A stretch of DNA of 64,000 nucleotides, taken from the NCBI GenBank assembly GCA_965240325.2, contig OZ251244.1:1116001-1180000 (forward strand). Reading direction: 5' to 3'. The notes below the pieces were generated by a model that made no database searches, was not told where the DNA came from, and saw only the letters and a program-made list of their open reading frames with translations. Origin of the DNA: Rebecca billardiae RCC1528 (lineage: Eukaryota > Protista > Haptophyta). A program made the position numbers and the translations under genes. The first letter of the stretch is position 1. Each line of letters begins with the position of its first letter. Of the stretch, positions 8,030-32,989 are shown in pieces.

Positions 8030-8563
8030 TCCTCCTCCGAACCGCGCGGCCCGGCCGGACGCCATACTGCGGGCGCGAGCACACCGTTTGACTGCATCTT
8101 TCGGAGAATCGCACCATCAATTAATTTGCTCAGCGCAGATGATTGGATTGCCTACATAATTTGGGTTTGGAGGCGGGTGCAAACAATAGCAACGGGCTGG
8201 CGTCAGCGCGACAGATCGGATGCAGATGCGATCTGGAATACTCTCGCGCGTCGACGAGGGCTGACGTCAGCGAATGAGCAACGACCGGTGGGTACCATCC
8301 ATGCATTCTCCGATTCTTCCGTGCAAGAGTCATCCACGTCCACACCCAATCGGCTTCGTCAGATGAAAATGACGACGAACACCCCGCCACAATTTTTCCA
8401 TCCACGACCCGCCCGAACGCCACTTTTGCCCGTCTTTTCGGTGCCCAGTTTCGCCGCCGGCTTGGCCAAACGACGCGACGTTCACCGGTCACGTAACTTT
8501 GACGTCACGGCTTGCAAGCAGCGTTGGCGCGGCCGCCGACCGCGACTTGCCCCTCCACCCGCC

Positions 8564-10388: not shown

Positions 10389-10505
10389 GGGGGCGGGCTC
10401 GGGCGGAGGGCACGCCCTCCGCCCCGCCCCTCGCGCCCGCCGCGCGCGCGCGTGCTCCCCGTGTGCTACCCACATCATCATCATATATATATGCACGCCA
10501 TATAT

Positions 10506-10559
10506 CAACAAGTGTCTCCAACTGTCCATCTACAACAAGTGCCTCCAACTGTCCATCTA
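10506..10559. repeat. 27-bp tandem duplication (CAACAAGTGYCTCCAACTGTCCATCTA x2) downstream of the PLP-protein gene
   Basis: Two adjacent copies with one mismatch. Confidence 0.8.
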
Positions 10560-11732: not shown

Positions 11733-14700
11733 ATGGACGAGCTGACCGACGCGGCGGCCGGGCCGGCGCCGCCCGAGCCGGACTCGGTGGCCGAGCTCTG
11801 CGCCCTGCTCCGCCGCCCGCCCGCCGAGCGCTCGCACGTCGACCGCGAGCGCGTGCGCGCGCTCGTCCGCGCGCTGAACCCTGCGGTCCTCTCACAGCTA
11901 CGGATGCACCACTCGGGCGCGGAGGGGGGCGGCGAGGCGGGGCACGGGGAGGGCGACGCGGCGCTGAGCGAGGACGACATCCTCGACCGCCTCCTCGCGC
12001 ACGCCGCCTGCGTCGCCCTCCCGCCTGGCCGCACGCTCGCGCGCCCGTCCGCGTTCCCTGAGAGAGTGCTCGTGGTGGCGGCGGGCCGCGTCGAGCTGCT
12101 CGAGCCGCGGATCGTCGCGGCGGCGGACGAGGAGAGCGACGAGGACGAGCCGAACGGCTCCGACCCGCTCGTCTCCCCCGACAAGCCCGGCCGGCGCATC
12201 ACGTGGAAGGCGCTGTCGTACGGGCGGCGGATCAGCGTGGAGCGACCGTGGCGCGCGCGCGTCGTCGGCCGCGGCGCGTGCATCGGGCTGCTGTCGCTGG
12301 CGCAGCACAACGCGCGGAACGACTACGAGGCGACGGTGTACCCCCGCCCCGACGCCGACGTCGAGGCGGCCGCGACACCCGCGTCCGCCGCGCAGCCGCC
12401 GCAGAGGCCGCCGCCGCCGCCCGCGCGGCTGAACAGCGCGCTTGAGAGAGGCGCGGGCGAAGGCGAGTCGGAGGAGGAGTGGACGCCTGGCGGGTGGGCG
12501 TGGGTGCTGGCGATCCCGCGCGCCGCGGCGCTCTCCTTCCTCGTCCCGAGCTACCGCCGCACGCTCCAGCAGCGCATGACGCTGCTCCGCAACACAGCGA
12601 TCTTCAAGACGTGGGCGCAAGAGGCGCTTGGTCAGCTGTGCGACCGGCTGACTCAGCGCACGCTGCGGCCGGACGAGGTGCTGTTTCGTCAGAACGACCC
12701 GGCGGAGTTCTGCTTCCTCGTGATCTCGGGCGGCGTCGACGTCTGCGTGCACACGCACGCGCGCCCGCCGCCGCCGCTCGCCGACGCGCCGCGCGAGGGC
12801 GGCGCGCTCGCGCGCGCACGGTGGGAGCTGCTGCGCCAGTGCACGAGCAGAGGCGGCGCGCACGCGCGCGCGCCGCTGCGCCTCGTCTCGACGCTGCACG
12901 CGGGCGCGCTGGTGGGCGAGGCGGCGCTGCTCACGGACGGGCTGCGCCGCAACGCCACGGTGATGGGCTCGGCGGCGGGTGGCGGCGGCGGCGGCGGCAG
13001 CGGCGCGCAGCCAGCCTCCAGCCCCGCCGCCGCCGCGTCGGCCGCGTCCGCCGCCGCGGCAGCGGACGCGCTCACCTCGCTCGGGATGGGCGGCGCGGTG
13101 CTCCTGCTGCTCTCGAAGGACGACCTGCTCGCGGCGCTCACAGAACGTGCGCGCGCCGGGCCGCGCCGCGCCGCGCCCTCGCTGCGCTGCGCTGCGCCCA
13201 CTCCGGGAAGCCTCCGCCTTTTCCCCGCCGGTTTATTATAATTTGTTTATTTGCTACTGTACTGTTTATGATGAGCGTGTGTGTGGCTGTAGGCTGTGCC
13301 TGAGCAGATGCCATTGCCAGCCGTGTGGCCGTGCTGTGTGGCGTATGGTTCAGCACGGTGCACGTGTGCGGGCCGGCGCGTGCCCGTGCGCCCTGACCCT
13401 CGTGGTGGTGAAGGCGGTCGTCGTCGAGCTACGCGTATGAGCATCACTCAACTGCCAAGGGGACTGGCCCGTTGGCACTGCAGCCGCAGCGGGGCGATGG
13501 GCGCTGGTGCTTCCACCCGGAAGCTGCTGCTGCGGCTGCTGCTGCTGCGGCGGCGGCTGCTGCTGCGCGGTGGCGCCAGTGCGCGTGCGCGCGCGCGCCG
13601 CGCCCACCTGACCGGCCGCGACTCCGCCGCGCGCTGCTCCGTAGGTATGCTCCGGGCCGCGCGCGCCGAGGCGGCGTTCAACGTCGCCTGCTCCAAGCCG
13701 CGCGCCGACCGCACCGACGCCGACGTCTCCGCGCTGTATGAGCGCGTGCACGCGCTGCCGCTCTTCGCGCGCCTGCCGGAGGCGTCGACGCGCGAGCTGT
13801 GCCGCGGCCTGACGTACGCACGCGTCGGCGCGGGCGTGCGCATCTGCGCGCACCCCAAGGGTGGCCCCGGGCTAGGCCCGGGCGGCGGCGGCGGTGCCGC
13901 CGCCGGCGGTGCCGCCGCCGCCGGCGCGGCGCACGCCGGTACCAAGGCGCCGCACACGCAGCTGGGCTTCGCCGCGACCGACGTGCTCGTCATGCTCTCG
14001 GGCCAGGCGAGTGTGCACGTGCACGTGTCTGTCAACGCGCTCACCGGACGGTTATACTCGCACGCGACGATTGTTGGCGGGGCGGGGAGCGGCGCGGCGG
14101 GCGGCGAGGGCGGCGAGGAGCGGCCGGCGCGGCGGAGGCGCAAGGGCGTCACGCCGGCGACGGCCGCGCTCGCAGCCGCCGCGGTCGCCGCCAACGCCAA
14201 CTCCGCGCGCACAGACGCGAGCGGCGACGGTGGCGACGGCGGCGGCGGCACTGCGGACGCGACGCCGCCGCACGCGCCGCGCCGCCGCTCGGAGCTCGGC
14301 CGCGCCGAGGCGCGCGCGCTGCGGCTCTTCGAGGAGAGCGCACAGGTGGCGGAGGCGGCGCGCGCGTTTGCCGGCGCCGGCGCGACGCGCGAGGGCCACG
14401 CCGCCGCCGCCGTCGCCACGCTCGCACACGGACAGTCCCACGGCTGGCGCTGGGAGACGGTCGAGCGCACCGCCGGTGCGGGTGATTCGATCAACGAGGC
14501 CGCCGCCGCGCTCGGCGACCCGCCCGACTCCTCCGCGCGCGCGCTGGGCCCGGTGGAGGTGCTCGCCATCTCGCGCGCCGCGTACCGCGCGCACGGCGGC
14601 GCGGCGGCGTACGCGGCCGAGCTCGAGGCCACCTCGGCAGAGCTGCTTCGAAGTGGGCTCTTTCCCGGCCCGCGCCTGGCAGAGCAGCACGCGCCGCCCG

Positions 14701-16187
14701 GGCTGGGCGCGGCGGCGCGCGCGGCCGCGGAGGCGGAGCTCCTGCGGATCGCGCCGCTGTTCCGCGCGTGCTCGCTGCGCCGCGGCCAGCTGCTCGCGTC
14801 CGAGCGCGCGCCCGCGCCCGCGCGCGCGCTGATCATTGTCAGCGGCGAGTGTCGACTGACCGTCTCGGCTCACGACGCGCTTACACACCTGCGCGAGGCG
14901 CAGCAGGCGGCGGAGACGAGCGCGATGCTGGCGCGGATGCGCGCGCCGCCGGGCAGCGGGGCCGCCGCCGCGCCGCTGCCGACGGTGGCGACGGCGGCGA
15001 GCGCGGCGGCGACGGGCGTGGCGGCGGCGGCGGCGGCGGCGGCGGCTGCGCGCCCGGCCGCGGACGCGCACGCCGACGCCGCCGCCGACGCGGCCGCGGC
15101 GGCGGTCCCAGCGGCGTCGGCCGGCACGGCCGCCCATCATCCGCACGCCGGCAGCCCGCTGCCCGCGCTCGGCGCGCTCGGCAGCGGCGCGCGCCGCGGC
15201 TCGACCGGTCCGCCGGCAATGCTCAGCGTCACGATGCTGGGCGGCGGCAACGTCTTCTGCGCCGCCACGCTCGTCGGGCTGGTCGAGCGGTACGCGTGGC
15301 GACTCGACGCGCACACGCCGCTGCGCGCGCTCGACATCGCCGACGCCGAGCTGCGCAAGCTGCTCCGCGGCGTCGGCGAGCGACAGCTCGAGACGCGCGG
15401 CGCGACGATGCGCGCCTGGATCGCCACGCGGACGGAGGAGGTGGTTCGCGCCGCGCACGCCGCGAGCGCGCTCTCGCCGCCGCCGCGCGCGGCCGCGGCG
15501 CGCGCGCTCGGCAGCCTCGAGCTGACGCCGCGCGCGCGCCGTTCGCGCGCGGCGCACGGCGCGCGCGCCGCCGGGCGGCCGGGCGGCCTCGATGGCGAGG
15601 GCGGTGGCGGTGGTGGCGGTGACGACGACGACGACGTGCCGCGCGCGCGCGCGGTGCCGGGGCGCGCCCCACCCGCCGTCCGCTCCCACGCGGCGCAGCA
15701 GCACCCGCCGCCGCCGCGCGCGCCCGCGCGCAGCTTTGCGAGCGCGACCTATGCCGCGCCGCCGGGCGCCCACCACGACGCGTCGCAGCCGCCGCGCGGG
15801 CGGCTGCACTCAGTCTCGCGCGGCGGCACGGTGCGCTCGCGGCCGCGGCGCGCGGCCGCGGCCGAGGCGGGCGCGGGCAGGGCCCCGACGGGGGCTGCGG
15901 CGGCGGGCGCGTGGCGCGGGGCCGAGCCGTCGCCGCCGCTCCCGCTCCTCACGCTGCCGCTGCCCTCCGTCGTCTCCGTCGCCGGGCGCGCGCCGCAGCC
16001 CGACGCCGCCGCCGACTCGAGCTCGCTCAGCCCGGGCCGGCGCGCGGCGCGTGACATGCACCGCCTGCCCAAGATGGGCGTTGACCCGAGCCGGTTCGCG
16101 CCGGCCGCGCCGCTCGCGGCGGAGGTGGACAAGCGGCGCCGACACTTTGTGTACGCCACCGACCTGCTCATCCGTGGCTACAGCTGA
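11733..16187 (+). CDS. Cyclic-nucleotide-binding domain protein with several, partly degenerate cNMP domains; exons 11733-13146, 13645-16187
   Basis: Clear cNMP domain: LRNTAIFKTWAQEALGQLCDRLTQRTLRPDEVLFRQNDPAEFCFLVISGGVDV...LHAGALVGEAALL...RRNATV. Further degenerate copies: LPLFARLPEASTRELCRGL and LIIVSGECRL. A phase-1 intron GTGCGC(13147)..TAG(13644) joins the two long ORFs in frame. Confidence 0.78.
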
Positions 16188-16858: not shown

Positions 16859-19800
16859 ATGGGCAGCTCCGTCGGCGCTCGAACGGCGGCGCTCCTCAGT
16901 GTGTGCGGCGCCGCCGTGGCCATCGACTACACCGCCACAGCCGCCGCCTTCGAGCCGCCGCCGCAGTTCTCCTCCGGCGGCGGAGGCGAGCTGAACGTGA
17001 CTCTCACGCTCGACGCCTTCCGCTACGAAAGCCCGTCGGGTGCGCTCCGAGCGCGCGCGCCGCCGCGCGCTGCAAGCACGCGCCGCGCGGCGACTCGAGC
17101 GAGGGCGCGCGCGTGCGCGCCCTCTCACCGCGACGATGCGCGCCCGACACCTGGGCGCCGCGTGTGCGCGCGCACCACCGCCGCCGCGACCGCTCGCTCG
17201 ACAACATCCACCGTTCCTCTTCAGGCACGGCATGGTGGTCGCGCGGGTTCAACGGCGGGATACCAGGCCCGGCGATCCGCGTCACGGCGGGCGACACGCT
17301 GCGGATCCAGCTCGTCAACGCCCTCGGCCCGGAGCCCACCGACACGTCGGCGCAGCACAACCAGTTCCGCCAGCCGAACCACACGAACGTGCACACGCAC
17401 GGGCTGCACATCGGGAGCGCCGAGCCGGCCGACAGCGTCTTCGTCGTGGTCGCGCCGGGCGAGTCGTACGCGTACGAGTACGCGCTCCCGACGTACCACA
17501 TGGGCGGCACGCACTGGTACCACCCGCACCACCACGGATCCACCGCGCTGCAGGCGGGCGGCGGCGCGGCCGGTCTGCTGATTGTGGACGACGCGCCGGG
17601 GGAGGTGCCGCCCGAGCTGGCCGCGGCGCCCGAGGTGCTGATGATGCTGTACCACGTGGACACGGACGAGCTCGAGCGCGCCGAGTCGAGCTCGGGCGGC
17701 GCGCTCACCCAGCTCGACGGCCCCGCGCTCGAGACAGTCCTCGTCAACGGCCAGACGCAGCCGGTGCTCACCGTGGACGCTGGCGTGTGGCACCGCTTCC
17801 GGTTCGCGTACGCGGCCGTGGTCGGCACGTCGCACGTGCGGCTGAGCGGATGCGAGCTCGGACTGGTCGCCAAGGACGGCGTGTACCTGCACGACGCGCC
17901 GCGCACCGTCAGCTCCGTCCGGCTGTACCCGGGTGCGCGCGCCGACGTGCTCGTGCGCTGCGCGACGCCCGGCGCCTCGTACGCGCTGGAGGCGTTTGAC
18001 GAAACCCGGCGGCGGCGGGGGCGGCGGCGGCGGCTGCAGGGCGGGCGGGCGCTGTACACGGGGACGATCGCGACGGTCTCGACGCTCAGCTCGCCCTCCG
18101 ACGGCGCGACCGCGCCCTTTCCCGCCTTCTCCGTCCACCGTCCGTGCTACCTAGCCGACCTCCGCGACGCCGGCGCTCAGATCTCGGCAGAGTCGCCGTT
18201 CGCGATCGGGCTCGGCCCGGCGCCGACGATCAACGGGGCGACGTTCAGCGGCGCGGGCACGTACCTGCACACGATGGGCGTGGGCGAGGTGCAGGAGTGG
18301 GCCCTCGACGGGCTGCGCGGCCACCCCTTCCACCTGCACATCAACCCGTTCCAGCTGGTTGACATGGCGGAAAGCGACTACTTCAAGCTCGGTGCGTGGG
18401 CATGCGGTTGCTGCTGCTGCTGCGGCGGCGGCTGCTGCTGCTGCTGCTGCTGAAGCTGAAGCTGCTGCTGCTGCCTGCACCCGCGCGTGCGCCCGCCGGC
18501 CCGCCCGCCCGCCATCCGCACCGGACCACATCCGACATCAGCAGCGCACTCACTCATCACTCATCATCGTGCCCCTGATGCGCCACAATGATGGCTGCTG
18601 CTTGTGCACTTGTTGCGCCGGCGCAGGCGACTGGCACGACACGCTGCTGCACGACACCGACCGCACCGTGACCGTCCGCTTCCAGACGGACTTCTTCGTG
18701 GGCGCGCAGGTGCTGCACTGCCACATCCTGAGACACGAGGACCTAGGGATGATGGCGGTTACGCAGATCGCAGGCGCGGAGGGCGGCGTGTGGGCGGGGG
18801 CGGAGGGGCTCGACCCCTCGTGCTACCGGGACTCGACGCGCGGGTACACGTGTGCAGAGTGCGCGCCGGTCATCCCGGCGCCGCCGCCCAGCCCGCCGCC
18901 CAGCTCACCGCCGCCGTCGAGCCCGCCGCTGTCGAGCCCGCCACTCCGCCCGCCACCTAGCACGCCGTCGCGCCCGCCGCCCAGCCCACCACCAAGCCCG
19001 CCGCCGCCATCAGCTCCACCGCCCGGCCCGCCGCCCAGCCCGCCGCCCGACGCGCCTCCAAGCCCGCCACCGAGCCCGCCGCCGAGCCCGCCGCCCAGCC
19101 CGCCGCCCAGCCCACCACCGAGCCCGCCACCGAGCCCGCCGCCGGCTCCACCGCCCGACTCACCCCCCAGGCCACCGCCACCAAGACCGCCACCGGCCGC
19201 GCCGCCAGGCCCGCCGCCGGGCCCGCCGCCGAGCCCGCCGCCAAGCCCGCCGCCGCCAAGCCCGCCGCCGAGCCAACCGCCGCCGAGCCCGCCGCCGAGC
19301 CAACCGCTGCCCAGCCCGCCGCCGCCCAAGGCACCGCCACCAAGCCCACCGTCGCCGCCGTTGCCAAGCCCGCCGCCCAGCCCGCCGTCCCCTTCTACGC
19401 CGCAGCCAACGCCACAGTCGCCGCCGCCGAGCCCACCGCCCAGCCCGCCGCCCCCTTCACTGCAGCCAAGCCCGCCGCCGCCGCGAGCCCGGCCCCTTCC
19501 GCCGCCATCGCCGCCCTCGCCACCGCCCAGCCCGCCGCCGCCACCACCACCGAGCCCGCCGCCCAGCCCACCGCCCCGCTCGCCGCCGCCCAGCCCGCCG
19601 CCGCCACCGCCACCGAGCCCGCCGCCCAGCCCACCGCCCCGCTCGTCGCCGCCCAGCCCGCCGCCACCGCCGCCGCCCAGCCCGCCGCCGCCACCGCCAC
19701 CGAGCCCGCCGCCCAGCCCACCGCCCCGCTCGCCGCCGCCCAGCCCGCCGCCACCGCCGCCGCCCAGCCCGCCGCCCAGCCCACCGCCCGTGCCACCGCC

Positions 19801-21019
19801 ACCGAGCCCGCCGCCGAGCCCACCGCCATCGTCGCCGCCACCGCCGTCACCTCCAAGCTCGCCGCCGAGCTCGCCGCCGAGCCCACCGCCCGCGCCGCCG
19901 CCACCGAGCCCGCCACTCCCACCACCACCATCGTCGCCGCCACCGCCGCCACCACCGAGCCTACTGCCCAGCCCGCCACCATCGCCGCCGCCGGCGCCGC
20001 CACCTCCAAGCTCGCCGCCGAGCTCGCCGCCGAGCCCACCGCCCGCGCCGCCGCCACCGAGTCCGCGACCACCACCACCGCCATCGCCACCACCGGCGCC
20101 TCCGCCACCGAGCCCACCGCCACCACCGCTACCATCGCCGCTGCCAGCGCCGCCGCCACCGAGCCCGCCGCCGAGCCCACCGCCGAGCCCGCCGCCGGCG
20201 CCGCCATCGCCACATCACCCGCCCCCACCAAGCGCACCACCTTGGGCGCCGCCCCGCGCTGCGCCGAGCCCGCCGCCGAGCCCTCCGCCGTTGCCGCTGG
20301 GCCAGGCGCAGCCCTCGTCGCCGCCGACGCGCCCGCCTTCGCGCCCGCCCCCACCGTCCCCACCGCCAGCCCCGCCGCCCTCACCGCCGCCGCCGCCTCC
20401 CTCGCCCCCGGCGCCGCCGTCGCCTCCGCCGAGCCCGCCTGGCCGCATCGTCACGATCGAGGTGGTCGTCGCCACGTCCATGGAGAGCTTTGACGAGGCG
20501 GCGCGCGCGAACTACACGGCGAGCCTGGCGCGCGTGCTCGGCGTCGACGCCTCGCGCATCCGCATCGTGCGCGTCACGGAGGGCAGCGTGCGCGTCGAGA
20601 CTGAGATTTTCGATCTCGATTCCGACGGCGTCAGCGTGGCCGAGGCCGTGCGGGGGCTCTCCGCGTCGCAGCTGTCGAGCGAGCTGGGGATGGTTGTGGA
20701 GCAGGCAGCGGTGACGGACGCGGGCAAATCGCCCCCACCACCGCTCGCGCCGCCGCCCCCGTCGGCACCGCCTCACGCGCCGCCGCTACTCGCGCCGCCA
20801 GGGCGCGTCGGCGCAGCGTCGGCCAGCGAGCTGCTGGGCTCCTCAGCCGTCATCGCGCTGTCCGCCGGAGGCGGCGGGCTCGGCTGCTGCTGCCTCGCGG
20901 CAGGGGCCTTCTTCGCGTGGCGCGCGTGCGCACGGCGCAGAAGATCGCTCCAGGCGCCGCTGTTCCTGAGCGGGGCCGGGGAGGCGGAAGAGGGCCGGAC
21001 GCGGCCCCGGCCGGTGTGA
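16859..21019 (+). CDS. Type I membrane-anchored multicopper oxidase (laccase/CueO-like) with Ser-Pro stalk, SEA-like module and TM; exons 16859-17039, 17225-18391, 18627-21019
   Basis: Signal peptide. All four Cu-binding motifs are present: TNVHTHG, HWYHPHHHG, HPFHLHINPF and LHCHILRHEDLGMM. These are followed by ~520 aa of SPPP repeats (18875-20440), RIRIVRVTEGSVRVE, a hydrophobic helix, and the basic stop-transfer WRACARRRR. Two phase-1 introns. Confidence 0.92.
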
Positions 21020-21299
21020 AGATGCGGGATGCGTTGATGCGGAATGTCGTTCCGTCCGTCAATGATTAATGAATCTGGTTGAGGTGATGAATATACTGGC
21101 GCGACGAGCGTCGAGCTGTGTTGACGGCCCCATACCAGATGCATAGGAGCACGAAATAGGAGCCCGAAATAGCCACAAGAGACGTCACTTTCGATCGTTG
21201 CTCCTCGAGATGCACGCGAATCGGCCAATCAGCAGGGCGCGTTCGCTCGGGAGCTAAACCGTGACGCCGAGCGACGAGGGTGCAAACAGGGCGGACGCG

Positions 21300-23753
21300 A
21301 TGGCCTTGGTAGCGCGCCTCTGCCTGCTCCTCGCGCTGGGCGCGGCCGCGCCGCGCGGCGCGTCGGCCGCCGGGCCGTGCACGGCCGCGGGCGACGACCC
21401 TTGGGCCCACGGCTGGCCCAAGCGCACCTGCTGCGCCGGCCTCTCCGAGTGCAAGAGCGACTTTGACTCGGACGGCGTCGCTTCGTTCCTCTGCCTCGCG
21501 TCGTGCGGCGCGCCGCCCGAGCCGGGCATGTGCACGGGCGCGGCGGCCGACCCGTGGGCGTCGGGCTCGGAGAAGCTGTGCTGCGACGGCCTCCACCCGT
21601 GCTTCGGCGACTTCGACGCCGACGGCGTCGCCTCCTTCCTCTGCCTCGACTCGTGCGACGCGATCCCGCGCGGCTCGTCGTTGTGCGCGGACGAGGCGGA
21701 GGACCCGTATGCGAGCGGCGCGGTCCGGCCGTGCTGCGCCGGGATGGACGCGTGCCTGTTCCAGTTCGACGGCCCGGACGCGCCCGCCTCGTGGCAGTGC
21801 CACGCCGACTGCGCGCAGCTCTGGACGCCGTCGGCGCCGCCCGCGCCGTCCGCGCCGCCCGCGCCGTCCGCGCCGCCCGCGCCCTCCTCGCCGCCGGCGG
21901 TGCCGGCGGGGATCTCGACGTGCGAGTCGGTGGGCGACCCGCACGTCACCACCTTTGACGGCGCGCGGTACGAGTACCAGGGCCTCGGCGCCTTCGAGCT
22001 CGCGCACGTGCCCGCCGTGCCGCTCGACGTACACACGTACCAGTGCCGCTGGGGCGTGGCGGCCGCGGCCAACACGGCGGTGGCGTGGACGCTCGGCGCG
22101 CACCGGTACGAGGTGTACGGCGAGACGCTGCTGATCGACGGCGTGGTGCCGGGCTTCTTCGCCGCCGCCGCCGCCGCCGCCGCCGAGCTGCCCCGCGCTA
22201 CGCTGCGCGCGCGCCTCTTCCGCCGCGCGCGGTGCGAGCACCGTCTGGACGACGGTGCGCTGATCCAGCTCGGCTGCATCGGCGCGTCCGACGCCCCGCT
22301 CGACCAGGTCCGGGTGCTGCTCGGCCGGACGGCAGTGATCGCGCTGCGCCGCACGGGGCACTTCACCACGGGCCACTGGTTCGACGTGTACGTGCGCACG
22401 CGCACCTCGTACGTCGCGGACGACGCAGACGTTCACGGGCTGTGCGCCGACCCGCTCGCGCCTGAGCGCAACGCGCTGCGCGGGGGGCTGTTCACTGTGA
22501 CTTCGCAGGCGTTCATCGCGATGGTGCGCACGTGCGACGAGGCGGCGGAGGTGCCGGACGAGCGGCCGTGCGAGCGCCCCGGCTTCGACTGCTGCGCGAT
22601 GGACGAGGCGCGCGCCGTGCGCCTCTGCGAGCACGTGCGCTGCGACGGCGTCACTTACGGCCGTTGCCTCTACGACTGCTGCGCCGCCGGCATCGACGAC
22701 TGTCGCCAAGCCTACCCGGTGCCGCTCACGTGCGCGAGCGGCGACGACGACGACGAGGAGGAGGAGGCGTGCACGCACGAGGGCGACGACCCGTGGCGGC
22801 GCGGCGAGCCGAAGCGCGCGTGCTGCGACGGTCTACGCGAGTGCCTCGGCGACTTCGACGCCGACGACGCCACGCCGTGGACCTTCAAGTGCTTCAACGG
22901 GACGTCTTGCCCCGCGCCCGCGCCGTCCGCGCCGCCCGCGCCGTCGGCGCCGCCCGCGCCGTCGGCGCCGCCCGCGCCGTCCGCGCCGCCCGCGCCGTCC
23001 GCGCCGCCCGTGCCGGCGTGCACGCACGCCGGCGCCGATCCGTGGGCGGGCGGCTGGCCCAAGCTGCCCTGCTGCCCAGAGCTGGCAGAGTGCCTCGGCG
23101 ACCACGACGGATCGGCCGAAACTGCATGGACGTACCTGTGCCTCGACGAGTGCGCGTGCACGCCCGAGGGCGGCGACCCGTGGCAGTTCGGCGAGCCGAA
23201 GCGCGCGTGCTGCGACGGGCTGAGCGAGTGCCTCGGCGACTTCGACGCCGACGACGCCACGCCGTGGTCCTTTCAATGTGTCCACGGCGACTGCCCTCCC
23301 TTCATGCCGTCGGCGCCGCCCGCGCCGTCGGCGCCGCCCGCGCCGTCCGCGCCGCCCGCGCCGTCCAAGCCGCCCGCGCCGTCCAAGCCTCCGTCGCCGG
23401 TGCCGCCACCGCCGCCGAGCCCGCCGCCTGCGCTGCCGCCCTCGACACCGCCGGCGTCGCCGCCCCCGCCGCCGCCCAGCCACCCGCCGCCGCACCCGCC
23501 GCCGCCCTCGGCACCGCCGAGCCCGCCGCCGCCCACCGGCTGCGGCGACTCCCTCGCGGACAACTTCGACCCCCTCGTCGTCGTCAACGCGCCGGGCGCG
23601 TGCCATTACCACGGCTGCATGGACCCGCTCGCGTGGAACTACGACTCGAGCGCGACGCACGATCCTGGAGAGCACTGCCGGTACGAGCCGCCGCCGAGCC
23701 CGCCGCCACCGCCCTCGCCGCCACCGAGCCACCCGCCGCCGCCGCCGAGCGCG

Positions 23754-23790
<37 letters not shown>

Positions 23791-24599
23791 CGCCGCATAG
23801 CCCGCCGCCCTCGCCGCCGCCGAGCCCGCCGCCGCCGACGGGCTGCGGCGACGAGGCGGCGGACAACTACGACCCGCTCGTCGTCGTCAACGTGCCGGGC
23901 GCGTGCCGCTACCACGGCTGCACCGACCCGCTCGCGTGGAACTACGACTCGAGCGCGACGCACGATCTGGGCACACACTGCCGGTACCAACCGCCGCCGA
24001 GCCAGCCACCGCCGCCCTCGCCGCCGCCGAGCCCGCCACCACCGTCGCCGAGCCCGCCGCCGCCGCCGCCGACCCCGCCGCCGCCGCCGCCGCCCGACTC
24101 GCCGCCACCGCCCTCGCCGAGCCCGCCGCCAAGCCCACCGCCGCCAAGCCCGCCGCCACCGCCCAGCCCGCCGCCGCCCTCGCCGCCACCACACCCGCCG
24201 CCGCCGAGCCCGCCGCCGAGCCCGCCGCCGCCGACCGGCTGCGGCGACCCGAAGGCGGACAACTACGACCCCCTCGTCGTCGTCAACGTGCCGGGCGCGT
24301 GCCACTACCACGGCTGCACCGACCCGCTCGCGTGGAACTACGACTCGAGCGCGACGCACGACTCTGGTGACCACTGCCGTTACGAGCCGCCGCCAAGCCC
24401 GCCGCCGCCGCCGTCGCCGCCGCCGAGCCCGGCGCCGCCACCGCCGTCGCCGAGGCCGCCGCCGCCGAGCCCGTCGCCGCCGCCGCCCTCGGCGCCGCCG
24501 CCGCCGAGCCCGCCGCCGCCGAGCCCGCCGCCGAGCCCGCCGCCGCCGAGCCCGCCGCCGCCAAGCCCGCCGCCGCCGCCTCCGCCCTCGCCGCCTCCG

Positions 24600-24630
<31 letters not shown>

Positions 24631-27600
24631 ACAGCCCGCCGCCCTCGCCGCCGCCGAGCCCGCCGCCGCCCACCGGCTGCGGCGACGCGCTCGCCGACAA
24701 CTACGACCCTCGGGTGGTCGTGGACGACCCCAGCGCGTGCCACTACCACGGCTGCATGGACCCGCTCGCGTGGAACTACGACTCGAGCGCGACGCATGAC
24801 CTGGGTGACCACTGCCGGTACCACCCGCCGCCGAGCCAGCCGCCGCCGCCGAGCCCGTCGCCGCCGCCGCCGTCGCCGCCGCCGGGCCCGCCGCCGCCGC
24901 CGCCGCCGAGCCCGCCGCCGCCGCCGCCGCCGCCCAGCCCGCCGCCGCCCTCGCCGCCGCCGAGCCCGCCACCGCCCACCGGCTGCGCCGACCGCGAGGC
25001 GGACAACTTCGATCCAAACGTCGTCGTCAACGTGCCGAGCGCGTGCCGCTACCACGGCTGCATGGACCCGCTCGCGTGGAACTACGACTCGAGCGCGACG
25101 CACGATCTGGGCACGCACTGCCGGTACGAGCCGCCGCCGAGCCCGCCGCCGCCGCCGCCGTCGCCGAGCCCGCCGCCGAGCCCACCGCCGCCGTCGCCGA
25201 GCCCGCCGCCGCCGCCGCCTGCGCCGCCGCCGAGCCCGCCGCCGCTGCCGCCGCCGCCGCGCCCGCCGCCGCCGTCACCGCCGCCGAGCCCGCCACCGCC
25301 CACCGGCTGTGGCGACCGTGCGGCGGACAACTACGACCCAAACGTCGTCGTCAACGACGCGAGCGCGTGCCGCTACCACGGCTGCATGGACCCTGCGGCG
25401 TGGAACTTCGACTCGACCGCGACGCACGATGCTGGGGCCCGCTGCCGATACGCACCGCCACCGAGCCACCCGCCGCCGCCGCCATCGCCGTCACCACCGC
25501 CGCCGCCGCCGTCGCCGAGCCCGCCGCCGCCGCCGCCGTCGCCGCCGCCGCCGCCGCCGCCCGGCTCGCCGCCACCGCCGTCGCCGAGCCCGCCGCCCAG
25601 CCCGCCGCCACCGACGCCGCCACCACCGTCGCCCAGCCCGCCGCCCAGCCCACTGCCGCCGCGCCCGCCGCCGCCCTCGCCCAGCCCGCCTCCGCCGTCG
25701 CCGAGCCCACCGCCCAGCCCGCCGCCGCCGACCCCGCCGCCGCCCTCGCCCAGCCCGCCACCGCCCTCGGCCCCGCCGAGCCCGCCGCCGCCCGCGGGCT
25801 GCGGCGACCGCGCGGCGGACAACTTCGACCCCCTCGTCGTCGTCAACGTGCCGAGCGCGTGCCGCTACCACGGCTGCATGGACCCGCTCGCGTGGAACTA
25901 CGACTCGAGCGCGACGCACGATCTGGGCACACACTGCCGGTACCAACCGCCTCCGAGCCCGCCGCCGCCGCCGCCGTCGCCGCCGCCGCCGCCGCCGCCG
26001 CCATCGCCGAGCCCGCCACCACCGCCGCCGAGCCCGCCGCCGCCGCCGCCGCCAGCGTCGCCACCGCGGCCGCCGCCGCCCTCGCCGAGCCCGCCGCCGC
26101 CATCGCCCAGCCCGCCGCCGAGCCCGCCGCCGCCGGCGCCGCCGCCGCCCTCGCCGAGCCCACCGCCCAGCCCGCCGCCGCCGATCCCACCGCCGCCCTC
26201 GCCCAGCCCGCCGCCGCCCTCGCCCTCCCCGCCGCCGCCCTCGCCCTCCCCGCCGCCGCCGCCCTCGCCCTCCCCGCCGCCGGCAGGCACCCAAGGCTGC
26301 TCCCCTTGCTTCTGGCGAGACGACATGGACGCGGGCGCGGCGCGCTGGTCGTTCCTGTCGCACCGCGCGCACACTAACCTGCTGCACGGCGAGGACTTCG
26401 ACGACTACTTCCGGCTTGCGTACTGGCGGCCGATCGGCTTCGAGCCGAGCACGCGGCCGAGCGCGCCGGGCAGCTTCCGCGCGGACGACTACGACCCGGA
26501 CTTCTCCGGCGTTCTCCGGAACGCGTGCGCGCACGCGTACAAGTGTGACGATGAGGCCGGCGGCGGGCAGCGGCGCGCGCTGACCGCGTCGCCGTACGAC
26601 TCGCTGCACGGCTGCGCCGACGGCAGCCGGCTGCTCCTGCAGCAGCTCGCGCTGCACGCCGTCGCCGCCGTCGCGAACGCGCACGCCGCCGCCGCCGGGC
26701 TGATGGACTATCCCTACACCCTCTCACAGATCCACGGCGACCGGAGCGCGTGCATTGGGCCGTACGACGCGGTGCCCGAGGGGCTGCTCGGCGGGACGTG
26801 GGGCGTGCACGCCGCGTTCGAGCCGAGCGGCCACGGCGCGCACAACACCGCGTACATGCGCGCGCTGCTCGACAAGCTGCAGGAGGCCAACAGCCACCGC
26901 GAGTGCCCGCTTGTGCGAGCGCCGCCGCCGAGCCCGCCGCCGCCGAGCCACCAGGGGTGCTCCCCGTGCTATTGGCGCCGAGATGCAATCTCGGGCAAGG
27001 CGGGCTGGGCGCTGGTGCACCTGCACGCGCGCGGGCCCGTGCTGCACGGCCCGCGCTTCGACGACTACTTCGGGCTGGCGTACTGGCGGCCCATTGGCTA
27101 CGAGCCGGGCGCGCAGCCCAGCGGGGGCGGCCGGTTCGACTGCGACGACTACGACCCGGACTTTGCCGGCGTGCTGCGCAACGCGTGCGCGGACACGTAC
27201 GACTCGTGCGACGAAGAGGCTGGCGGCCACCGGCGCGGCCGGCAGCTCACCGCGCGGCCCACCTCGCCGTACGACCAGCTCGGCGGCTGCGCCGACGAGT
27301 CGCGGCTCCTTCTGCAGCGGCTTGCGACGCAGGCCGTCGCCGCGGTCGCCAACGCGCACCTCGCCGCCGCCGGGCTGATGGACTATCCCTACACCCTCTC
27401 ACAGATCCACGGCGACTGGAGCGCGTGCATTGGGCCGTTCGACGCGGTGCCCGAGGGGCTGCTCGGCGGGACGTGGGGCGTGCACGCCGCGTTCGAGCCC
27501 TCCGCCAACGGCCGGCACAACACCGCGTACATGCGCGCGCTGCTCGCGCGGCTCGAGGCGGCCAACAACGGCAGGGATTGCCCGGTCGGCCGCAGCCCGC

Positions 27601-27760
27601 CGCCGGCGCCGCCTTCGAGCCCGCCAGCGCCCCCGAGGGCTGGCGGCGACGACGACGACGACGACGACTCGAGCAGCGGCGGTGGCGACGACGACGACGA
27701 CGATGACTCCGCCAGCGGTGGTGACGACGACGACGACGACGATGACTCCGCCAGCGGCGG

Positions 27761-27791
<31 letters not shown>

Positions 27792-28084
27792 AGCGGCGAC
27801 GACGACGACGACACGCCCAGTGGTGACGACGACGACGACGAAGCCGCCGGCGACGACGATGACGACGGCGGCTCTCCCGTCCCCCACGACCCAGCCGCTG
27901 ACTACTGCCCGCGCTGCAAGAAGGGCGGCGCGTGCAGCCACGCCTGCTGCGTGACGACGGCCGTCGACCGCGGCTCCAACGGCTGCTTCTCCGGCTGGAC
28001 CGAATCTGCATGCAGCGCGCAGACGGACGAGTACGTCTGGTGCGGCGCAGAGTACGCGGACTCGGGCAGTGGCGGTGCCGGCGG

Positions 28085-28117
<33 letters not shown>

Positions 28118-28190
28118 CGACGACGACAGCGTCCTCGACGAGTTGGCCGACTTTGACGGGCTGGACGACGACCGACGACGAAGCCGATGA
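21300..28190 (+). CDS. Giant secreted modular glycoprotein (~2296 aa): Cys-rich modules, VWD domain, extensin-like SPn linkers, 7 GCxD..NYD repeats, 2 tandem globular domains, poly-Asp tail
   Basis: Single uninterrupted ORF with signal peptide MALVARLCLLLALGAAA. Six C-x4-5-DP[WY]-x-CC..C..FD modules. VWD start CESVGDPHVTTFDGARYEYQGLG followed by a Cys-rich C8-like segment. Seven GC.D..ADN[YF]DP..YHGC.DP.AWN[YF]DS.ATHD units. Duplicated QGCSPC[FY]WR domain and Asp-rich C-terminus. Confidence 0.88.
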
Positions 28191-28476: not shown

Positions 28477-30213
28477 TTATGAATTATTATGGCCGGCAGC
28501 CTGGCGGAGTGGCGCGGGGCTGCATGCATGCATTTGCTGCCTGTATATATATATATATGTATTACGCTGAATACGCACGGAGGCGGTCATCGCCGGCGAA
28601 GCGTAGTTGTTATTGACGACGTCGGTCTGCTCGGCGCCCCGGGACTCCGCGTCGACCAAGGCGGGCGGCAGCTGCGCGATGCGCGTGGGCCGCCAGACAA
28701 ACCCATTCGCGGCCGCCACGACGACGGCCCGGGTGGCATCGTCCGCACCATCGTGCGCCGTGTCCTGCTCTGCGTTCGGGCCGTGGCCGAGCGCGGCCGT
28801 TTGCATGCCGCACGAGTGCACGCCTCCGTCCGCACTGACAAAGAGCGAGTGGCTGTGGCCGAAGGAGCAGCCCACGACGCGCTCGTGCCTGAGGGCGTGC
28901 ACGCGCACGGGGGCGCCGACGCACGCCGGGGCTGCTGGCCCTTGGCCCAGCTCCCGGCACTTGTTGGCGCCGAACGTGTACACGCTGCCGTCAGCGCCGA
29001 GCACGGCGCTGCAGTCAAACCCCGTGCACGCGCGCACAGCGCGCACGCCCGCCAGCGCCTCGATGCGCGTGGGCACGTGGCAGGCTGACTGCTCGGGGGC
29101 GGCGTCGGCGAGGCAGCCCGACCTGCCCCAGCCGAAGCCGTGCACGCGCCCCGCGTCGTCCACCACCAGGCTGTGCGCGCTGCCCGCGCTCACGTGCACG
29201 GCGCGCACGCCGCCCAGCCAGAGGGGCTGAATTAATTTCGGAGTCCAAAAAGACTCGCGGCTCTCGTGCCCCAGCCGGCCGTGCTCGCCCGTGCCGCACG
29301 AGTAGACGGCGCCTTCGGCGTCGAGCAGCAGCGCGTGGCAGAAGCCCGCGCTCACCGCGCCGACGCGCACGCCGTCCAGCGCCTCGATGCGCTGCGGCGC
29401 CCACCGCTCAGTCCGGTCCGCGTGCCCCAGGTGGCCGAATTGATTAAAGCCCCAGCTGTAGGCCCCGCCGGTGGCGGTGAGAGCAAAGCCGTGGCGGATG
29501 CCGGCGGCGATGGCGACGACGGACGCGGGCGGGAGCGCCTCGACGCGGGCGAACGACCCGCGCGCCTCGCGGTCGCCGAGGCCCAGCTGGCCGCACCTGT
29601 TCTCGCCGCACGCGTACACCGCGCCGGCATCGCTGAGCGCGAGCAGGTGGGCCCAGCCAGCGGCCACCGCGCGCACGCGCACGGCTGCGAGCGAGGCGAC
29701 GCGCGTCGGCACCAGCACCTCCGCGGCGTGCGGGTGCCCCAATGCCGGGCACGGCCGGCGCTCGTCGGATGCCGCGTCGTCCACCGCCTCCTCGCCGCAC
29801 GTGTGTAGCACGCCCTCCGCGTCCACAAACGCGCTCAGGGCGAGGCCGCTGCGCGCCCTGCCGGCCACGGCGACGTCCGCCTGCGCGGCGGCGAGCTCGA
29901 GCACGCGCTCGAGCGCGAAGAGCTCCGCCGTCCACGTGCAGCTGCCCACCGGCAGCCGCGCAGGCAGCGAGCGCTCGTGCCCACGCGTGCGCGCGCGCTC
30001 GCGCAGCGCGTGCTCGACCGGCGAGCGGCCACCCGGCGGGCCGCGGAAGAGGCGCGAGGTGCCGTTGGCAGCGGTGAGGTCGCGCGCGTGCGCGAGAAAG
30101 CTCAGAATGCGATCGATGCCATCGGCGGGCAAGGATGCCAGCACGGGCCCGCGCTCCACGCCGGAGGGCTGCTCGCCGTCGGCGCGCGATGCGTCTTGAT
30201 GCTCGTCCGCCAT
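28477..30213 (-). CDS. F-box-like + RCC1 repeat protein, paralog 2
   Basis: LASLPADGIDRILSFLAHARDLTAANGTSRLF followed by RCC1 repeats collinear with 3244-4755. The last ~50 codons read into AT-rich, UTR-like sequence, so the 3' end is uncertain. Confidence 0.85.
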   Translation of the reverse strand: MADEHQDASRADGEQPSGVERGPVLASLPADGIDRILSFLAHARDLTAANGTSRLFRGPPGGRSPVEHALRERARTRGHERSLPARLPVGSCTWTAELFALERVLELAAAQADVAVAGRARSGLALSAFVDAEGVLHTCGEEAVDDAASDERRPCPALGHPHAAEVLVPTRVASLAAVRVRAVAAGWAHLLALSDAGAVYACGENRCGQLGLGDREARGSFARVEALPPASVVAIAAGIRHGFALTATGGAYSWGFNQFGHLGHADRTERWAPQRIEALDGVRVGAVSAGFCHALLLDAEGAVYSCGTGEHGRLGHESRESFWTPKLIQPLWLGGVRAVHVSAGSAHSLVVDDAGRVHGFGWGRSGCLADAAPEQSACHVPTRIEALAGVRAVRACTGFDCSAVLGADGSVYTFGANKCRELGQGPAAPACVGAPVRVHALRHERVVGCSFGHSHSLFVSADGGVHSCGMQTAALGHGPNAEQDTAHDGADDATRAVVVAAANGFVWRPTRIAQLPPALVDAESRGAEQTDVVNNNYASPAMTASVRIQRNTYIYIYRQQMHACSPAPLRQAAGHNNS

Positions 30214-30346: not shown

Positions 30347-31516
30347 CAGCTCAGGGCCTCAGGCAGGCGAGATTGACGCCCGCCAACTGTCACCGCCCAT
30401 GAAGCCGTCGCCGATGGTAGCGCCGCCGGAAAAATTCGTTCAGCCGTCCGCCTGCGAGGCCTGGATGAGGGCTGCGGCCGCCTCGCGGCGCGCAATTGTA
30501 GCTAGTAGTTGGCGGGCGTCGATCCTTTGATGTACGGGCCGAGCCGCCGAGGTGCCGAGGCAGCGCGTCGTCAGGAGACCAATGGCCAAATGCCATTCAA
30601 TGAATCATCAATGTCATTCCGTCTCATGTCGGTCGTCTGACCTCAGCATCGTCAGCAGCTGCCACTGCACAAGGCTGCCACTCCAACCACTGACAGACCA
30701 GCGGGCAGCGGCGGCCTGAGTCTCTAAATCCACGAGGCCAACCCACGCAGGCCGTCGGGCCAGTGACTGCGCGCGGCCACAGCCTGCGAACAGAGCAGTC
30801 GGCGCCCGACTTTGCGGTCCACCAGCGGCGCCAGCCGACTAACTCGCCGCCCGAGTGGCCGCAGCAGCGGGACGCAAGGCCACGTCGTCCGGACTCAGGA
30901 AGTTGGGCGCCATCAGGCCATCGCCATCTGTGACTAGACCGGCTGGCGGACACATGGCCGTACACACTGCGTCACTCGCGGGCAGCGCGGCGGCGTGAGG
31001 CGGCATGGCGCGCCCCCATCATGCGCAAGCCTCGCCCCGGGCGCGCGCCCGACCCGCGCCGACCGCACCGCGCACCGCGTGCGCGTTGCCACGGCTGGCG
31101 CGTTGCCACGGCTGGCTCTTGGTGCGGCGCGCGGGCGCGGGCTAGCCTGAGGCACGGCGAGGGCGCCGGCGAGCGCGGTGCGCGGCGTAGGAGGGTACTG
31201 CGTGCTGTTCAGCTGGCGACCAACCACGCGCGCCGTGTCCGCGCCCGCTGCCGCGGGCGCAGGAGCACGAGGCGTGCGCACGCGAGCTACGCACCCTCCT
31301 CACAGTCTCAAAAAGCTGCCGCCGCCGGCCTGGGCCGGTCAGGGGAATCTGATTATTCCCGCGGGAATCAGACCGCGCAGCAGCCGGCGGGGCCGCGGCC
31401 GGCGGCCGGACCGGGCGGGGGAGGCACTATCCCTTGCCCTGTCCAAGCGGAAAGGGTGGCGTCCACCCAGCAGGCCAGCACCCTCCCTCCTGCCACCTCT
31501 TCTCGCGCTTGACTCG

Positions 31517-32989
31517 ATGGCCACGGCACAAACGTGCGCACCGCGCCGCGCGCTCGACGGCCTGCCGCACGACGCGCTCGAGCCTATCCTCGCGTTCGTG
31601 CCGCCGCGCGACCTCGCCAGCCTGAACGTCACCGCGCGCCTCTTCCACGCCGCGCGCCTTCCCGGCGAGCGCTCGCCGGTCGAGCACGCGCTGCGCGTGC
31701 GCGCGCGCGCGCGCGGGCACGAGCGCACGCTGCCCGAGCATAAGACGCTGCCCTCGGGCGTGCGTACATGCACGGAGGAGCTGTTCGAGCGCGAGCGCGT
31801 GCTTGAGCTCGCGATCGCGCATGCGTCCCCAGTCTCCGCAAGCGACTGCTTCAGTGCATTTGTGGACGCGGAGGGCGGGCTGCACACGTGCGGCGAGGAG
31901 CCAGCGAGGGACGAGGACGGACATCTGACGGGCAAGTATCGAGCGCACGCGGCCGTCGGTCACGTGGGACCGCTGGACGCGCGCGTGCCCACGCACGTCG
32001 CCTCCCTCAGCGCAGTGCGCGTGGCCGCTGTGGCCGCAGGCTCCTACCACCTGCTCGCGCTGAGCGACGACGGCACCGTGTACGCGTGCGGCCGCAATGG
32101 CTACGGCCAGCTGGGGCTGGGCGACAAGGAGGAGCGGCGTACATTCGCTCTGGTGGACGCCTTGCGGAGTGACGCCGTCGTGGGCATCTCGACCGGTACC
32201 TTCCACAGCGTCGCGCTCACTGCCGCTGGCTGTGCGTACAGCTGGGGTTGCAACAACTTTGGCCAGCTCGGCCACGCCGGCAAGAAGGAGAAGCTGAAGC
32301 CGACGCGCATCGAGGCGCTGGACGGCGTGCGCATCGGTGGCGTGGCAGCAGGCGCTCACCACACGCTGCTTCTATCTGCGCAAGGCGCCGTCTACTCGTG
32401 CGGTGAAGGCTTATTGGGCCGTCTCGGCAACGGCTACGAGCAGCAGCGGCGCACGCCGATGCGCATCGAGGCGCTCGCGAGCGTGCGCGCCGTGCACGTG
32501 AGCGCGGGCGCTGCGCACAGCCTGGTGGTGGACGCAGCAGGCAGCGTGTACTCGTTCGGATACGATGGGCGCGGCCAGCTCGGCCACGGTGCCCGTGGGG
32601 TACTTCTTTCCACGCCCCGGCGCATCGAGGCGCTCGCTGGTGTGCACGCCTTGCGCGCGTGCGCTGGCTACACCAGCAGCGCTGTGCTGGGCGCGGACGG
32701 CAGCGTGCACACGTTCGGGCACAACGAGTACGGCCAGCTGGGTCATGATGGCGCTGGCGAATTATCGATGCCCACGCGTGTTGGCGCCCTCGCCCAAGCT
32801 CGTGTGGCACGCTGCACCATGGGCCACTACCACTCGCTGTTTGTGAGTGCGGACGGCAGCGTGTACGCATGCGGCAAGCGCTCGGCTGCGCTCGGCCTCG
32901 GCATGAGCAAGGCCGAGCAAGACGAGCCCACCCAGCGGATTGACACGCCCACGTGCATCGAGACGGCGTGGCGTCCGCGTGTCTGCTGA
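31517..32989 (+). CDS. F-box-like + RCC1 repeat protein, paralog 3 (divergent from paralog 2)
   Basis: LDGLPHDALEPILAFVPPRDLASLNVTARLF, the shared linker SPVEHALR.RAR.RGHER, and RCC1 repeats (VYACGRNGYGQLGLG, AYSWGCNNFGQLGH, VHTFGHNEYGQLGH). Confidence 0.88.
   Translation: MATAQTCAPRRALDGLPHDALEPILAFVPPRDLASLNVTARLFHAARLPGERSPVEHALRVRARARGHERTLPEHKTLPSGVRTCTEELFERERVLELAIAHASPVSASDCFSAFVDAEGGLHTCGEEPARDEDGHLTGKYRAHAAVGHVGPLDARVPTHVASLSAVRVAAVAAGSYHLLALSDDGTVYACGRNGYGQLGLGDKEERRTFALVDALRSDAVVGISTGTFHSVALTAAGCAYSWGCNNFGQLGHAGKKEKLKPTRIEALDGVRIGGVAAGAHHTLLLSAQGAVYSCGEGLLGRLGNGYEQQRRTPMRIEALASVRAVHVSAGAAHSLVVDAAGSVYSFGYDGRGQLGHGARGVLLSTPRRIEALAGVHALRACAGYTSSAVLGADGSVHTFGHNEYGQLGHDGAGELSMPTRVGALAQARVARCTMGHYHSLFVSADGSVYACGKRSAALGLGMSKAEQDEPTQRIDTPTCIETAWRPRVC

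Follow-up and report, generated by a model that had tools for sequence, protein, structure and literature searches.

A predicted stalked multicopper oxidase and a giant GDPH-bearing mosaic protein encoded by neighbouring genes in the haptophyte Rebecca billardiae

Three-domain multicopper oxidases (MCOs) are known from bacteria, and giant secreted proteins that bear GDPH-type domains are known from animals and diatoms. A 64,000-nucleotide stretch of the haptophyte Rebecca billardiae RCC1528 (contig OZ251244.1, positions 1,116,001 to 1,180,000 of the forward strand; here called the window, with positions counted from its first letter) carries one gene reminiscent of each. Gene A is predicted to encode a membrane-anchored oxidase on a long Pro/Ser-rich stalk, and gene B encodes a predicted secreted mosaic protein of 2,296 residues. 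The window is part of contig 27 of a 72-Mb genome that comprises 41 contigs and has a GC content of 60-82%. Such GC richness, for which a value of 73% has been given in Diacronema (PMC8379373), and best hits to haptophyte sequences would fit a pavlovophyte. A sequence-only reading of this DNA had proposed that the two genes form an enzyme and substrate pair for building or hardening an extracellular coat, scale, or adhesive. The analysis described here does not bear that proposal out: the Pro/Ser regions contain no Tyr of their own, the presumed substrate module is a generic one, the linkage is not repeated at other loci, and no fusion of the two kinds of domain was found among the oxidase homologues. 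We favor instead, with a probability of about 0.6, the view that A and B are separate neighbours drawn from a large repertoire of modular surface proteins and do not form a dedicated enzyme-substrate pair.

How does the locus compare with described systems? The bacterial three-domain MCOs, such as 2xu9, CueO, and the Mco of lactic acid bacteria (COG2132, "FtsP/CotA-like"), share with the gene A product three cupredoxin domains, four copper motifs, and a type 1 (T1) copper motif of the form HCHIL(E/R)HED.GMM that includes an axial Met. Unlike them, gene A is eukaryotic and spliced, and its product has a signal peptide, a stalk of about 530 residues, a juxtamembrane module, a membrane anchor, and an Arg-rich insert. 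The tail-anchored MCOs of marine algae (the Prymnesium parvum "laccase" and proteins from Chrysotila, Cymbomonas, Eutreptiella, and Laminaria) are 36-50% identical to the catalytic part of gene A. Like gene A, they mostly carry a Ser/Thr/Pro-rich C-terminal tail, in many cases with a hydrophobic anchor, and one metagenomic homologue, L037, has the same order of oxidase, stalk, module, and anchor.

For gene B, the closest functional analogues would be the gel-forming mucins of animals and the GDPH-bearing adhesive-trail proteins of diatoms (bioRxiv 10.1101/2023.03.06.531300). The D assemblies of gel-forming mucins, VWF, FCGBP, and RGM resemble the modelled gene B domain in fold (Z 10-12 over approximately 190 residues), in the placement of GDPH at the canonical start of the domain, and in the Cys-rich, helical, C8-like part that follows. 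Gene B departs from them in that the identity is only 13-18%, the match falls below the Pfam VWD threshold, there is no TIL or E module, and lineage-specific 6-Cys modules flank the domain. The diatom adhesive-trail proteins, namely, Ac629 of Amphora and its relatives, are likened to gene B by architecture: they too are giant, modular, and secreted, and they combine a GDPH-type domain with long Pro/Ser/Thr-rich regions (bioRxiv 10.1101/2023.03.06.531300). They belong, however, to another lineage and are accompanied by other modules. Finally, the extensins and other hydroxyproline-rich glycoproteins of plants and volvocine algae have abundant Ser-Pro(3-5) repeats, as do both genes A and B. In contrast to extensins, the repeats of A and B lack Tyr cross-link motifs and have folded, Cys-rich domains interspersed among them.

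Tests of a link between the oxidase and the mosaic protein

If the oxidase were to couple Tyr residues in the manner of extensin cross-linking, where would those residues lie? In extensins, the cross-links form via Tyr within the repeat backbone (PMC5371791). In composition analysis of genes A and B, the Pro/Ser regions of both proteins proved free of YxY and VYK motifs. The gene A stalk, with its 57 S-P(3 or more) motifs, contains zero Tyr, and the only Tyr counted in the Pro/Ser segments of gene B are seven, each of which is the last residue of a module. Because the Pro/Ser regions themselves hold no Tyr, motifs for extensin-type cross-linking are absent from both the stalk and the linkers, and the extensin-like chemistry that the sequence-only reading had envisaged finds no place there. 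The same reading had credited the two genes with hundreds of SPPP repeats. Such repeats are indeed present, but they number 57 in approximately 550 Pro/Ser-rich residues of gene A and 75 in the approximately 800 residues of the Pro/Ser-rich part of gene B.

Does the sharing of these repeats nevertheless tie the two genes together? A DNA pattern for PPPxPPPxPPP has 64,758 matches in the genome, versus 115 for the reversed control, and the 64-kb window accounts for 23 of them, which is below the genome-average density. From the first 1.6 Mb listed, the number of loci with this pattern can be estimated at several hundred. In this alga, coding sequence rich in Pro and Ser runs through the whole genome, and since such repeats abound, their occurrence in both A and B carries no weight.

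The candidate target Tyr of gene B lie instead in a series of double modules (23538-25949, + strand; delimited by alignment A2 and AlphaFold) that are separated by Pro/Ser linkers of 45 to 120 residues. There are seven of these Tyr/His/Trp-rich elements, just as had been counted at first sight, although each proves to be a tandem pair of one 24-residue unit with two Cys. The consensus of this unit over the 27 copies in alignment A2 is GCTDxxAxN[YF]DxxATVDDGxCx[YF]. Each gene B module has 3 or 4 Tyr and one Trp. Across the 27 copies, the Tyr positions alternate with Phe, and the Trp is replaced by Phe, Arg, Ser, or Ala. Because Tyr and Phe interchange in this way among paralogues, the module aromatics look like conserved positions of a fold rather than dedicated redox targets. 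As a mini-domain, the module is generic: the genome has at least 133 matches to it, spread over approximately 38 loci and mostly within open reading frames (ORFs) of 2,000 to 9,600 residues. AlphaFold folds it with good confidence (pLDDT 84) into a compact knot that has little in the way of regular secondary structure, and for this shape neither Foldseek nor a profile search returned a match in the PDB. In the ESM Atlas, it could be superposed at TM scores of 0.65-0.74 and 1.6-2.7 Å on stretches without a name in Bacteroidota Por-tail, MAM, and GH16 proteins. A comparison by language-model features likewise led to unnamed clusters as the nearest, which belong to the phylum Haptophyta wherever a phylum is recorded. 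The sole feature of the modules that is specific to gene B is their His content, at 3.3 residues per module versus 0.95 in the paralogues (approximately 3.5-fold).

A working pair might also be expected to recur, and conserved linkage had been put forward as a check. The genome contains eight oxidase loci and about ten VWD loci, and gene A-gene B is the single adjacent pair among them. A stalked oxidase on contig 8 has a dynein heavy chain gene approximately 5 kb downstream, the oxidase paralogue on contig 38 has no gene B-like neighbour, and no oxidase match was found on contig 17, where a giant paralogue of gene B resides. Seven oxidase-homologue loci from other organisms (L037-L039 and L081-L084) contain no relatives of gene B; at L037, the 2.8 kb downstream of the oxidase stop codon hold no VWD or Cys module. 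Thus, the pairing is absent at the seven other oxidase loci, at about nine other VWD loci, and at the seven homologue loci. Fusions tell the same story, in that 0 of 120 oxidase homologues have the module motif or GDPH joined to the oxidase.

The oxidase of gene A, its stalk, and its relatives

Gene A lies on the + strand with its ATG at 16859 and its stop codon at 21017-21019, and it has three exons. The gene model (16859-21019) was examined by aligning the exon translations one by one to transcript-derived homologues, on which the pieces abut within one residue (P0027: 27-59, 64-425, and 427 onward). Exon 1 (16859-17039) contains the start codon, the signal peptide, and the N terminus of the oxidase, and its last base is the first of a split codon; the counterpart of residues 27-60 in P0027 is residues 27-59. 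Intron 1 (17040-17224) is a GT..AG intron in phase 1. The exon alignments support the join across it, as does the intron-less homologue L037, which is continuous from exon 1 to exon 2. Exon 2 (17225-18391) covers cupredoxin domains 1 and 2 and the start of domain 3. It is followed by intron 2 (18392-18626), also GT..AG, at which the flanking exons abut at residues 425/427 of P0027 and 402/405 of P0030; a (GCT)n/(GGC)n trinucleotide microsatellite lies within this intron (18400-18480). The first part of exon 3 (18627-18859) completes cupredoxin domain 3, as delimited by Pfam Cu-oxidase_2, and then encodes a short 3-Cys motif.

Three Pfam families match above their cut-offs: Cu-oxidase_3 (58 bits, 1.2e-15), Cu-oxidase (54.8 bits, 1.5e-14), and Cu-oxidase_2 (27.5 bits, 2.9e-6), the last of which is divided by intron 2. 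Judged against the pattern HxH, HxH, HxxHxH, and HCHxxxHxxxxM (10 His and 1 Cys), the four copper motifs are all intact, with HTHG, WYHPHHHG, and HPFHLH in exon 2 and HCHILRHEDLGMM in exon 3. The T1 motif HCHILRHEDLGMM includes the axial Met and aligns with HCHILEHEDTGMM of bacterial Mco/CueO-type chains. The solved structure closest to exon 2 is the Thermus thermophilus laccase 2xu9 (E 2e-32), with CueO, CotA, and fungal laccases far behind, and the nearest solved relatives take in both laccases and cuprous oxidases. By these sequence features, gene A is predicted to encode a three-domain MCO of the bacterial type (CueO/Mco/Thermus-like) that is a type I membrane protein.

Between oxidase domains 2 and 3, exon 2 encodes the Arg-rich insert mentioned above, RRRRGRRRR (17900-17960). 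At the matching position, L037 has an insert that is much longer, acidic, and Cys containing. The site is a surface loop that differs between homologues, or perhaps one used for processing.

What follows the oxidase is more unusual. Composition and translation delimit the stalk, approximately 530 residues rich in Pro and Ser, to 18860-20449. It leads into the juxtamembrane module of about 95 residues (20441-20740), which was recognized by its recurrence in the genome (alignment A3). The last part of the gene (20840-21019) encodes a hydrophobic segment at approximately 20840-20920, a basic stop-transfer stretch, and a short cytoplasmic tail before the stop codon. Hydropathy peaks at 1.78 at exon-3 residues 739-741, after which the sequence reads RACARRRR. 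The description of gene A as an intact MCO with a transmembrane anchor, made at first from the letters alone, is therefore upheld by the three cupredoxin domains, the four copper motifs, and this hydrophobic segment with its basic flank.

Copies of the juxtamembrane module number at least 15 in the genome, among them those in several giant ORFs and in the oxidase paralogues of contigs 8 and 14, and L037 has one as well (3459-3734). In every copy inspected, it precedes a membrane anchor. No match to it was found in Pfam or among PDB sequences. A G-S-x-x-V stretch, kept in 8 of the 11 copies in alignment A3, may be compared with the G/S-V-V-V cleavage motif of SEA domains, though a SEA-like identity is unproven. 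The module looks like a general piece of a surface-display "chassis." The whole design of stalk, module, and anchor is repeated in L037 and in the contig-8 oxidase paralogue, and the contig-14 paralogue also bears the module. The contig-38 paralogue has no stalk.

How common are such oxidases? A word search with the oxidase returned 729 relatives, the best of which are 46-50% identical. Named sources include Prymnesium, Chrysotila, Cymbomonas, Eutreptiella, Laminaria, and amphioxus, and because of this spread, the gene A oxidase can be placed in a widespread marine eukaryotic family of bacterial-type MCOs. In 83 of the 103 homologues listed with an HCH motif, the sequence runs on for at least 60 residues beyond that motif, and 38 of those 83 tails hold a strongly hydrophobic segment, which argues that tail anchoring is common in the family. 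The unusual point of gene A is the length of its tail, at approximately 780 residues versus 60 to 410 in the listed homologues, from a search that admitted proteins of up to about 900 residues. Two of the homologue loci have neighbours of another kind. At L038, an ENA metagenome contig (805-9357), the gene directly upstream of the oxidase homologue and in the same orientation encodes a REJ-domain protein of 2,119 residues; it is large and extracellular and is unrelated to gene B. At L081, a JGI metagenome contig, a gene for a CobW-family GTPase of the metallochaperone type lies divergently adjacent to the oxidase homologue (7791-12394).

The mosaic protein of gene B and the surrounding locus

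Gene B (21300-28190) is a single uninterrupted ORF on the + strand, with its ATG at 21300 and its stop codon at 28188-28190. A spacer of 280 bp (21020-21299) separates it from gene A, and the coordinates and shared orientation first read from the sequence are exact. By hydropathy, the product has a clear signal peptide (21300-21371, including the start codon) and no membrane segment, in agreement with the original suggestion of a soluble, secreted protein. The N-terminal part begins with three 6-Cys modules of the pattern C..DPW..G..CC..L.EC..FD.D...C...C (21378-21812). These are followed by a SAPPAP linker and a domain of approximately 285 residues that starts with CESVGDPH (21885-22739). Three further 6-Cys modules with SAPPAP linker between them (22770-23294) come next; pattern searches located them, and the last (residues 620-665) was read from the translation. 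Beyond the seven double modules with their Pro/Ser linkers, there are two tandem domains of about 220 residues each (26277-27614), delimited by genome and protein searches. The protein ends in an acidic tail (27648-28190) that consists of (D7-8-S-x-S-G-G) repeats, a Cys-rich motif at approximately 27900-28055, and a last poly-Asp run before the stop codon. The poly-Asp tail, too, is present in the translation as had been described.

Is the GDPH-containing region a VWD domain at all? The Pfam VWD profile (PF00094) scores 21.9 bits on gene B, below the gathering score of 22.9, and matches at profile positions 1-30 only. The structural comparison is far clearer. An AlphaFold model built on ten paralogues from the genome, which has moderate confidence (pLDDT 66, pTM 0.68), matched the D assemblies of MUC2, VWF, and MUC5AC in Foldseek with an E value of 3e-7 and a probability of 1.0; MUC5B, FCGBP, and RGM were also matched. 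VIA-align gave a Z of 12.2 with an rmsd of 3.4 Å over 194 residues (model residues 8-282). It found 37 VWD-family entries at Z of at least 7.7, and the next unrelated fold scored 3.7. The GDPH itself, at residue 212, is invariant in the ten paralogous copies. Because both Foldseek and VIA-align lead to mucin and VWF D assemblies, the modelled domain is best taken as a genuine VWD-C8-type assembly, and the GDPH-containing VWD domain proposed from the sequence is thus confirmed by fold despite its score below the Pfam threshold. One of its loops carries a poly-Ala/Arg insert (22125-22200, residues approximately 276-300) that none of the nine alignment A1 paralogues shares, and model confidence is low there.

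In the genome, 6-Cys modules accompany the VWD paralogues elsewhere too. The closest paralogue of gene B is an ORF of 4,937 residues on contig 17 (317385-332195, minus strand) that contains the tail Cys motif, double modules, 6-Cys modules, and VWD in a different order. Because the same blocks occur there in another arrangement, this paralogue points to domain shuffling within the family. Searches beyond this genome yielded little. A metagenome scan with the VWD alignment found one weak contig of 1.1 kb. A word search with gene B residues 1660-2105 and 25-690 returned nothing among the eligible proteins, which were those of 1,263 to 4,018 residues, and low-complexity words may have crowded the candidates. 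The two domains of about 220 residues are 71% identical to each other, and there is no other copy in the genome. An exhaustive HMMER search of 1.84 billion representative proteins gave 0 hits with this domain, Pfam has no match, and an Atlas feature search returned sub-threshold noise alone. On these searches, it is a true orphan domain.

The genes on either side are unrelated to A and B. Upstream of gene A are ORFs with cNMP-binding domains (11670-16187). Downstream of gene B is a divergent pair of RCC1-repeat genes, at 28477-30213 (-) and 31178-32989 (+), the first of which is convergent with gene B and ends 286 bp from its stop codon. Because that interval is as short, spacers of about 280 bp are ordinary at this locus. 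Two arrangements were considered and ruled out. The region is not a wall-gene cluster, given that the neighbours are cNMP-binding, RCC1, and EamA genes. Nor are A and B parts of a single long fused gene, since gene A ends in an anchor, a basic tail, and a stop codon and gene B starts with its own signal peptide.

Competing explanations and what the locus may mean

What, then, would two such proteins do as independent members of a surface repertoire? If the gene A stalk is glycosylated and adopts a polyproline-II rod (3.1 Å per residue), it could hold the enzyme up to about 160 nm from the membrane. The displayed ecto-oxidase would oxidize diffusible substrates, either reduced metal ions or small phenols, and reduce O2 to water. 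Gene B would be a mucin-like or adhesive mosaic protein of the extracellular matrix. Its VWD-C8 assembly and disulfide-knotted modules may promote multimerization, possibly with acid-triggered autocleavage at Asp-Pro as in MUC2, FCGBP, and RGM, and by analogy with MUC2 and FCGBP, the GDPH could provide its own, oxidase-independent route to covalent attachment. The Pro/Ser linkers would serve as spacers, and the poly-Asp tail would bind cations. The reach of the stalk bears on another proposal that likewise leaves gene B aside, namely, that gene A is a Fet3-like ferroxidase of reductive iron uptake. The type I membrane topology is that of Fet3p, a ferroxidase is the usual reading of a membrane-bound MCO in marine phytoplankton (PMC4460010, PMC7676907), and the genome does contain one FTR1 permease. 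However, Fet3p passes Fe(III) directly to Ftr1p (PMC7676907), and a stalk of some 530 residues would set the enzyme far from the permease; a reach of about 160 nm fits diffusible substrates in a coat and fits poorly with such a hand-over. In addition, the FTR1 gene is carried by contig 17, on which the oxidase search gave no match, and among solved structures the nearest relatives are of the bacterial laccase and CueO types, with no Fet3p in the best 60 PDB sequence matches. A ferroxidase role is accordingly considered unlikely.

Several linked readings have more at stake in the adjacency of the two genes. In the one first proposed, the stalked oxidase oxidizes Tyr of the gene B modules, and the cross-links formed in this extensin-like fashion hold together a coat, scale, or adhesive. 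Both products are predicted to be extracellular and are encoded a short distance apart on one strand, the oxidase is intact, the modules offer their several Tyr and one Trp apiece, the VWD-C8 fold suits a polymer-forming matrix protein, and counting just the two families, VWD-oxidase adjacency would arise by chance about 1% of the time. Set against this are the observations laid out above: the Pro/Ser regions are devoid of Tyr, YxY, and VYK, whereas extensin cross-links sit in backbone repeats (PMC5371791); the module Tyr positions accept Phe in paralogues; the modules fold compactly; the module is generic; and there is neither linkage at other paralogues or the seven homologue loci nor fusion in 120 homologues. 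Taken together, these make Tyr coupling quite improbable. The chemistry of the enzyme points the same way. The axial-Met, CueO/Mco-like T1 site is not of the high-potential type that Tyr oxidation would favor. A second link relies on copper or quinones, with gene A as a cuprous or catechol oxidase. The His-rich modules and poly-Asp tail of gene B would then bind Cu(II), or the His would take quinone adducts as in insect cuticle tanning, and the result would be a metal-buffering or tanning system at the cell surface. The T1 motif and best structural relatives are of the CueO/Mco/Thermus type, the modules are enriched in His relative to their paralogues, the MUC2 D1-Cu(II) structure 7prl is among the VWD fold matches (Z 10.2), a CobW-type metallochaperone gene neighbours the oxidase homologue at one locus, and cupredoxin and MCO proteins have been reported in coccolith and coral matrices (PMC11685980). 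This case is entirely circumstantial, however. No Met-rich substrate loop was noticed when the exon 2 translation was read by eye, the module His positions are not conserved in paralogues, and the A-B linkage is itself not conserved. Compared with Tyr-Tyr coupling, a variant based on copper handling or quinone tanning is no less plausible, which still leaves it very doubtful.

The view that A and B are merely neighbours has its own difficulties, and four points keep a link between the genes alive. (i) The naive chance of finding one of 10 VWD loci within 5 kb of one of 8 oxidase loci in 72 Mb is approximately 0.01. (ii) The co-orientation and 280-bp spacer, with the promoter of gene B overlapping the 3' end of gene A, make shared regulation plausible. 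(iii) The gene-specific enrichment of His in the modules might stem from the binding of metals or from quinone-adduct chemistry linked to the oxidase. (iv) There are the coccolith and coral matrix reports just mentioned (PMC11685980). A further weakness lies in the homologue loci used for comparison, which share only 36-48% identity and are perhaps not orthologous. As for the first point, the pairing was picked after the fact; the chance rises to about 0.04 when the approximately 38 module-bearing loci are counted and approaches 1 when all Pro/Ser-rich loci are. The true significance of the adjacency lies somewhere between these extremes, from about 0.01 to near 1, and because the pairing was noticed only afterward, the adjacency is not decisive and cannot carry the claim alone. 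In the boldest form of a link, the two genes would be a co-regulated unit for surface hardening or metal handling. Kept at a distance of about 150 nm by a rigid stalk, the oxidase would make quinones, radicals, or Cu(II) within a coat of VWD-polymerized, His- and Asp-rich gene B protein and thereby cross-link or metallate that coat. We know of no such oxidase-coat unit described for haptophytes, and we regard its existence as unlikely. All linked readings together would claim only a small share of the probability.

Overall, what the locus means depends on whether the pairing is functional. Were it so, it would offer the first molecular handle on how surface coats are built and hardened in non-calcifying haptophytes, and oxidase-driven curing of matrices, known from insect cuticle, spore coats, and fungal walls, would gain a new eukaryotic lineage. 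Should the pairing have no function, three things remain: the recurrent display of enzymes on very long Pro/Ser stalks, with at least two oxidase paralogues so displayed here; GDPH-type VWD mosaic proteins that form a family beyond animals and diatoms; and a domain of 220 residues for which 1.84 billion proteins offer no detectable relative. Although not surprising in kind, the stalk display, the VWD family, and the orphan domain are useful for annotating the surface proteomes of algae.

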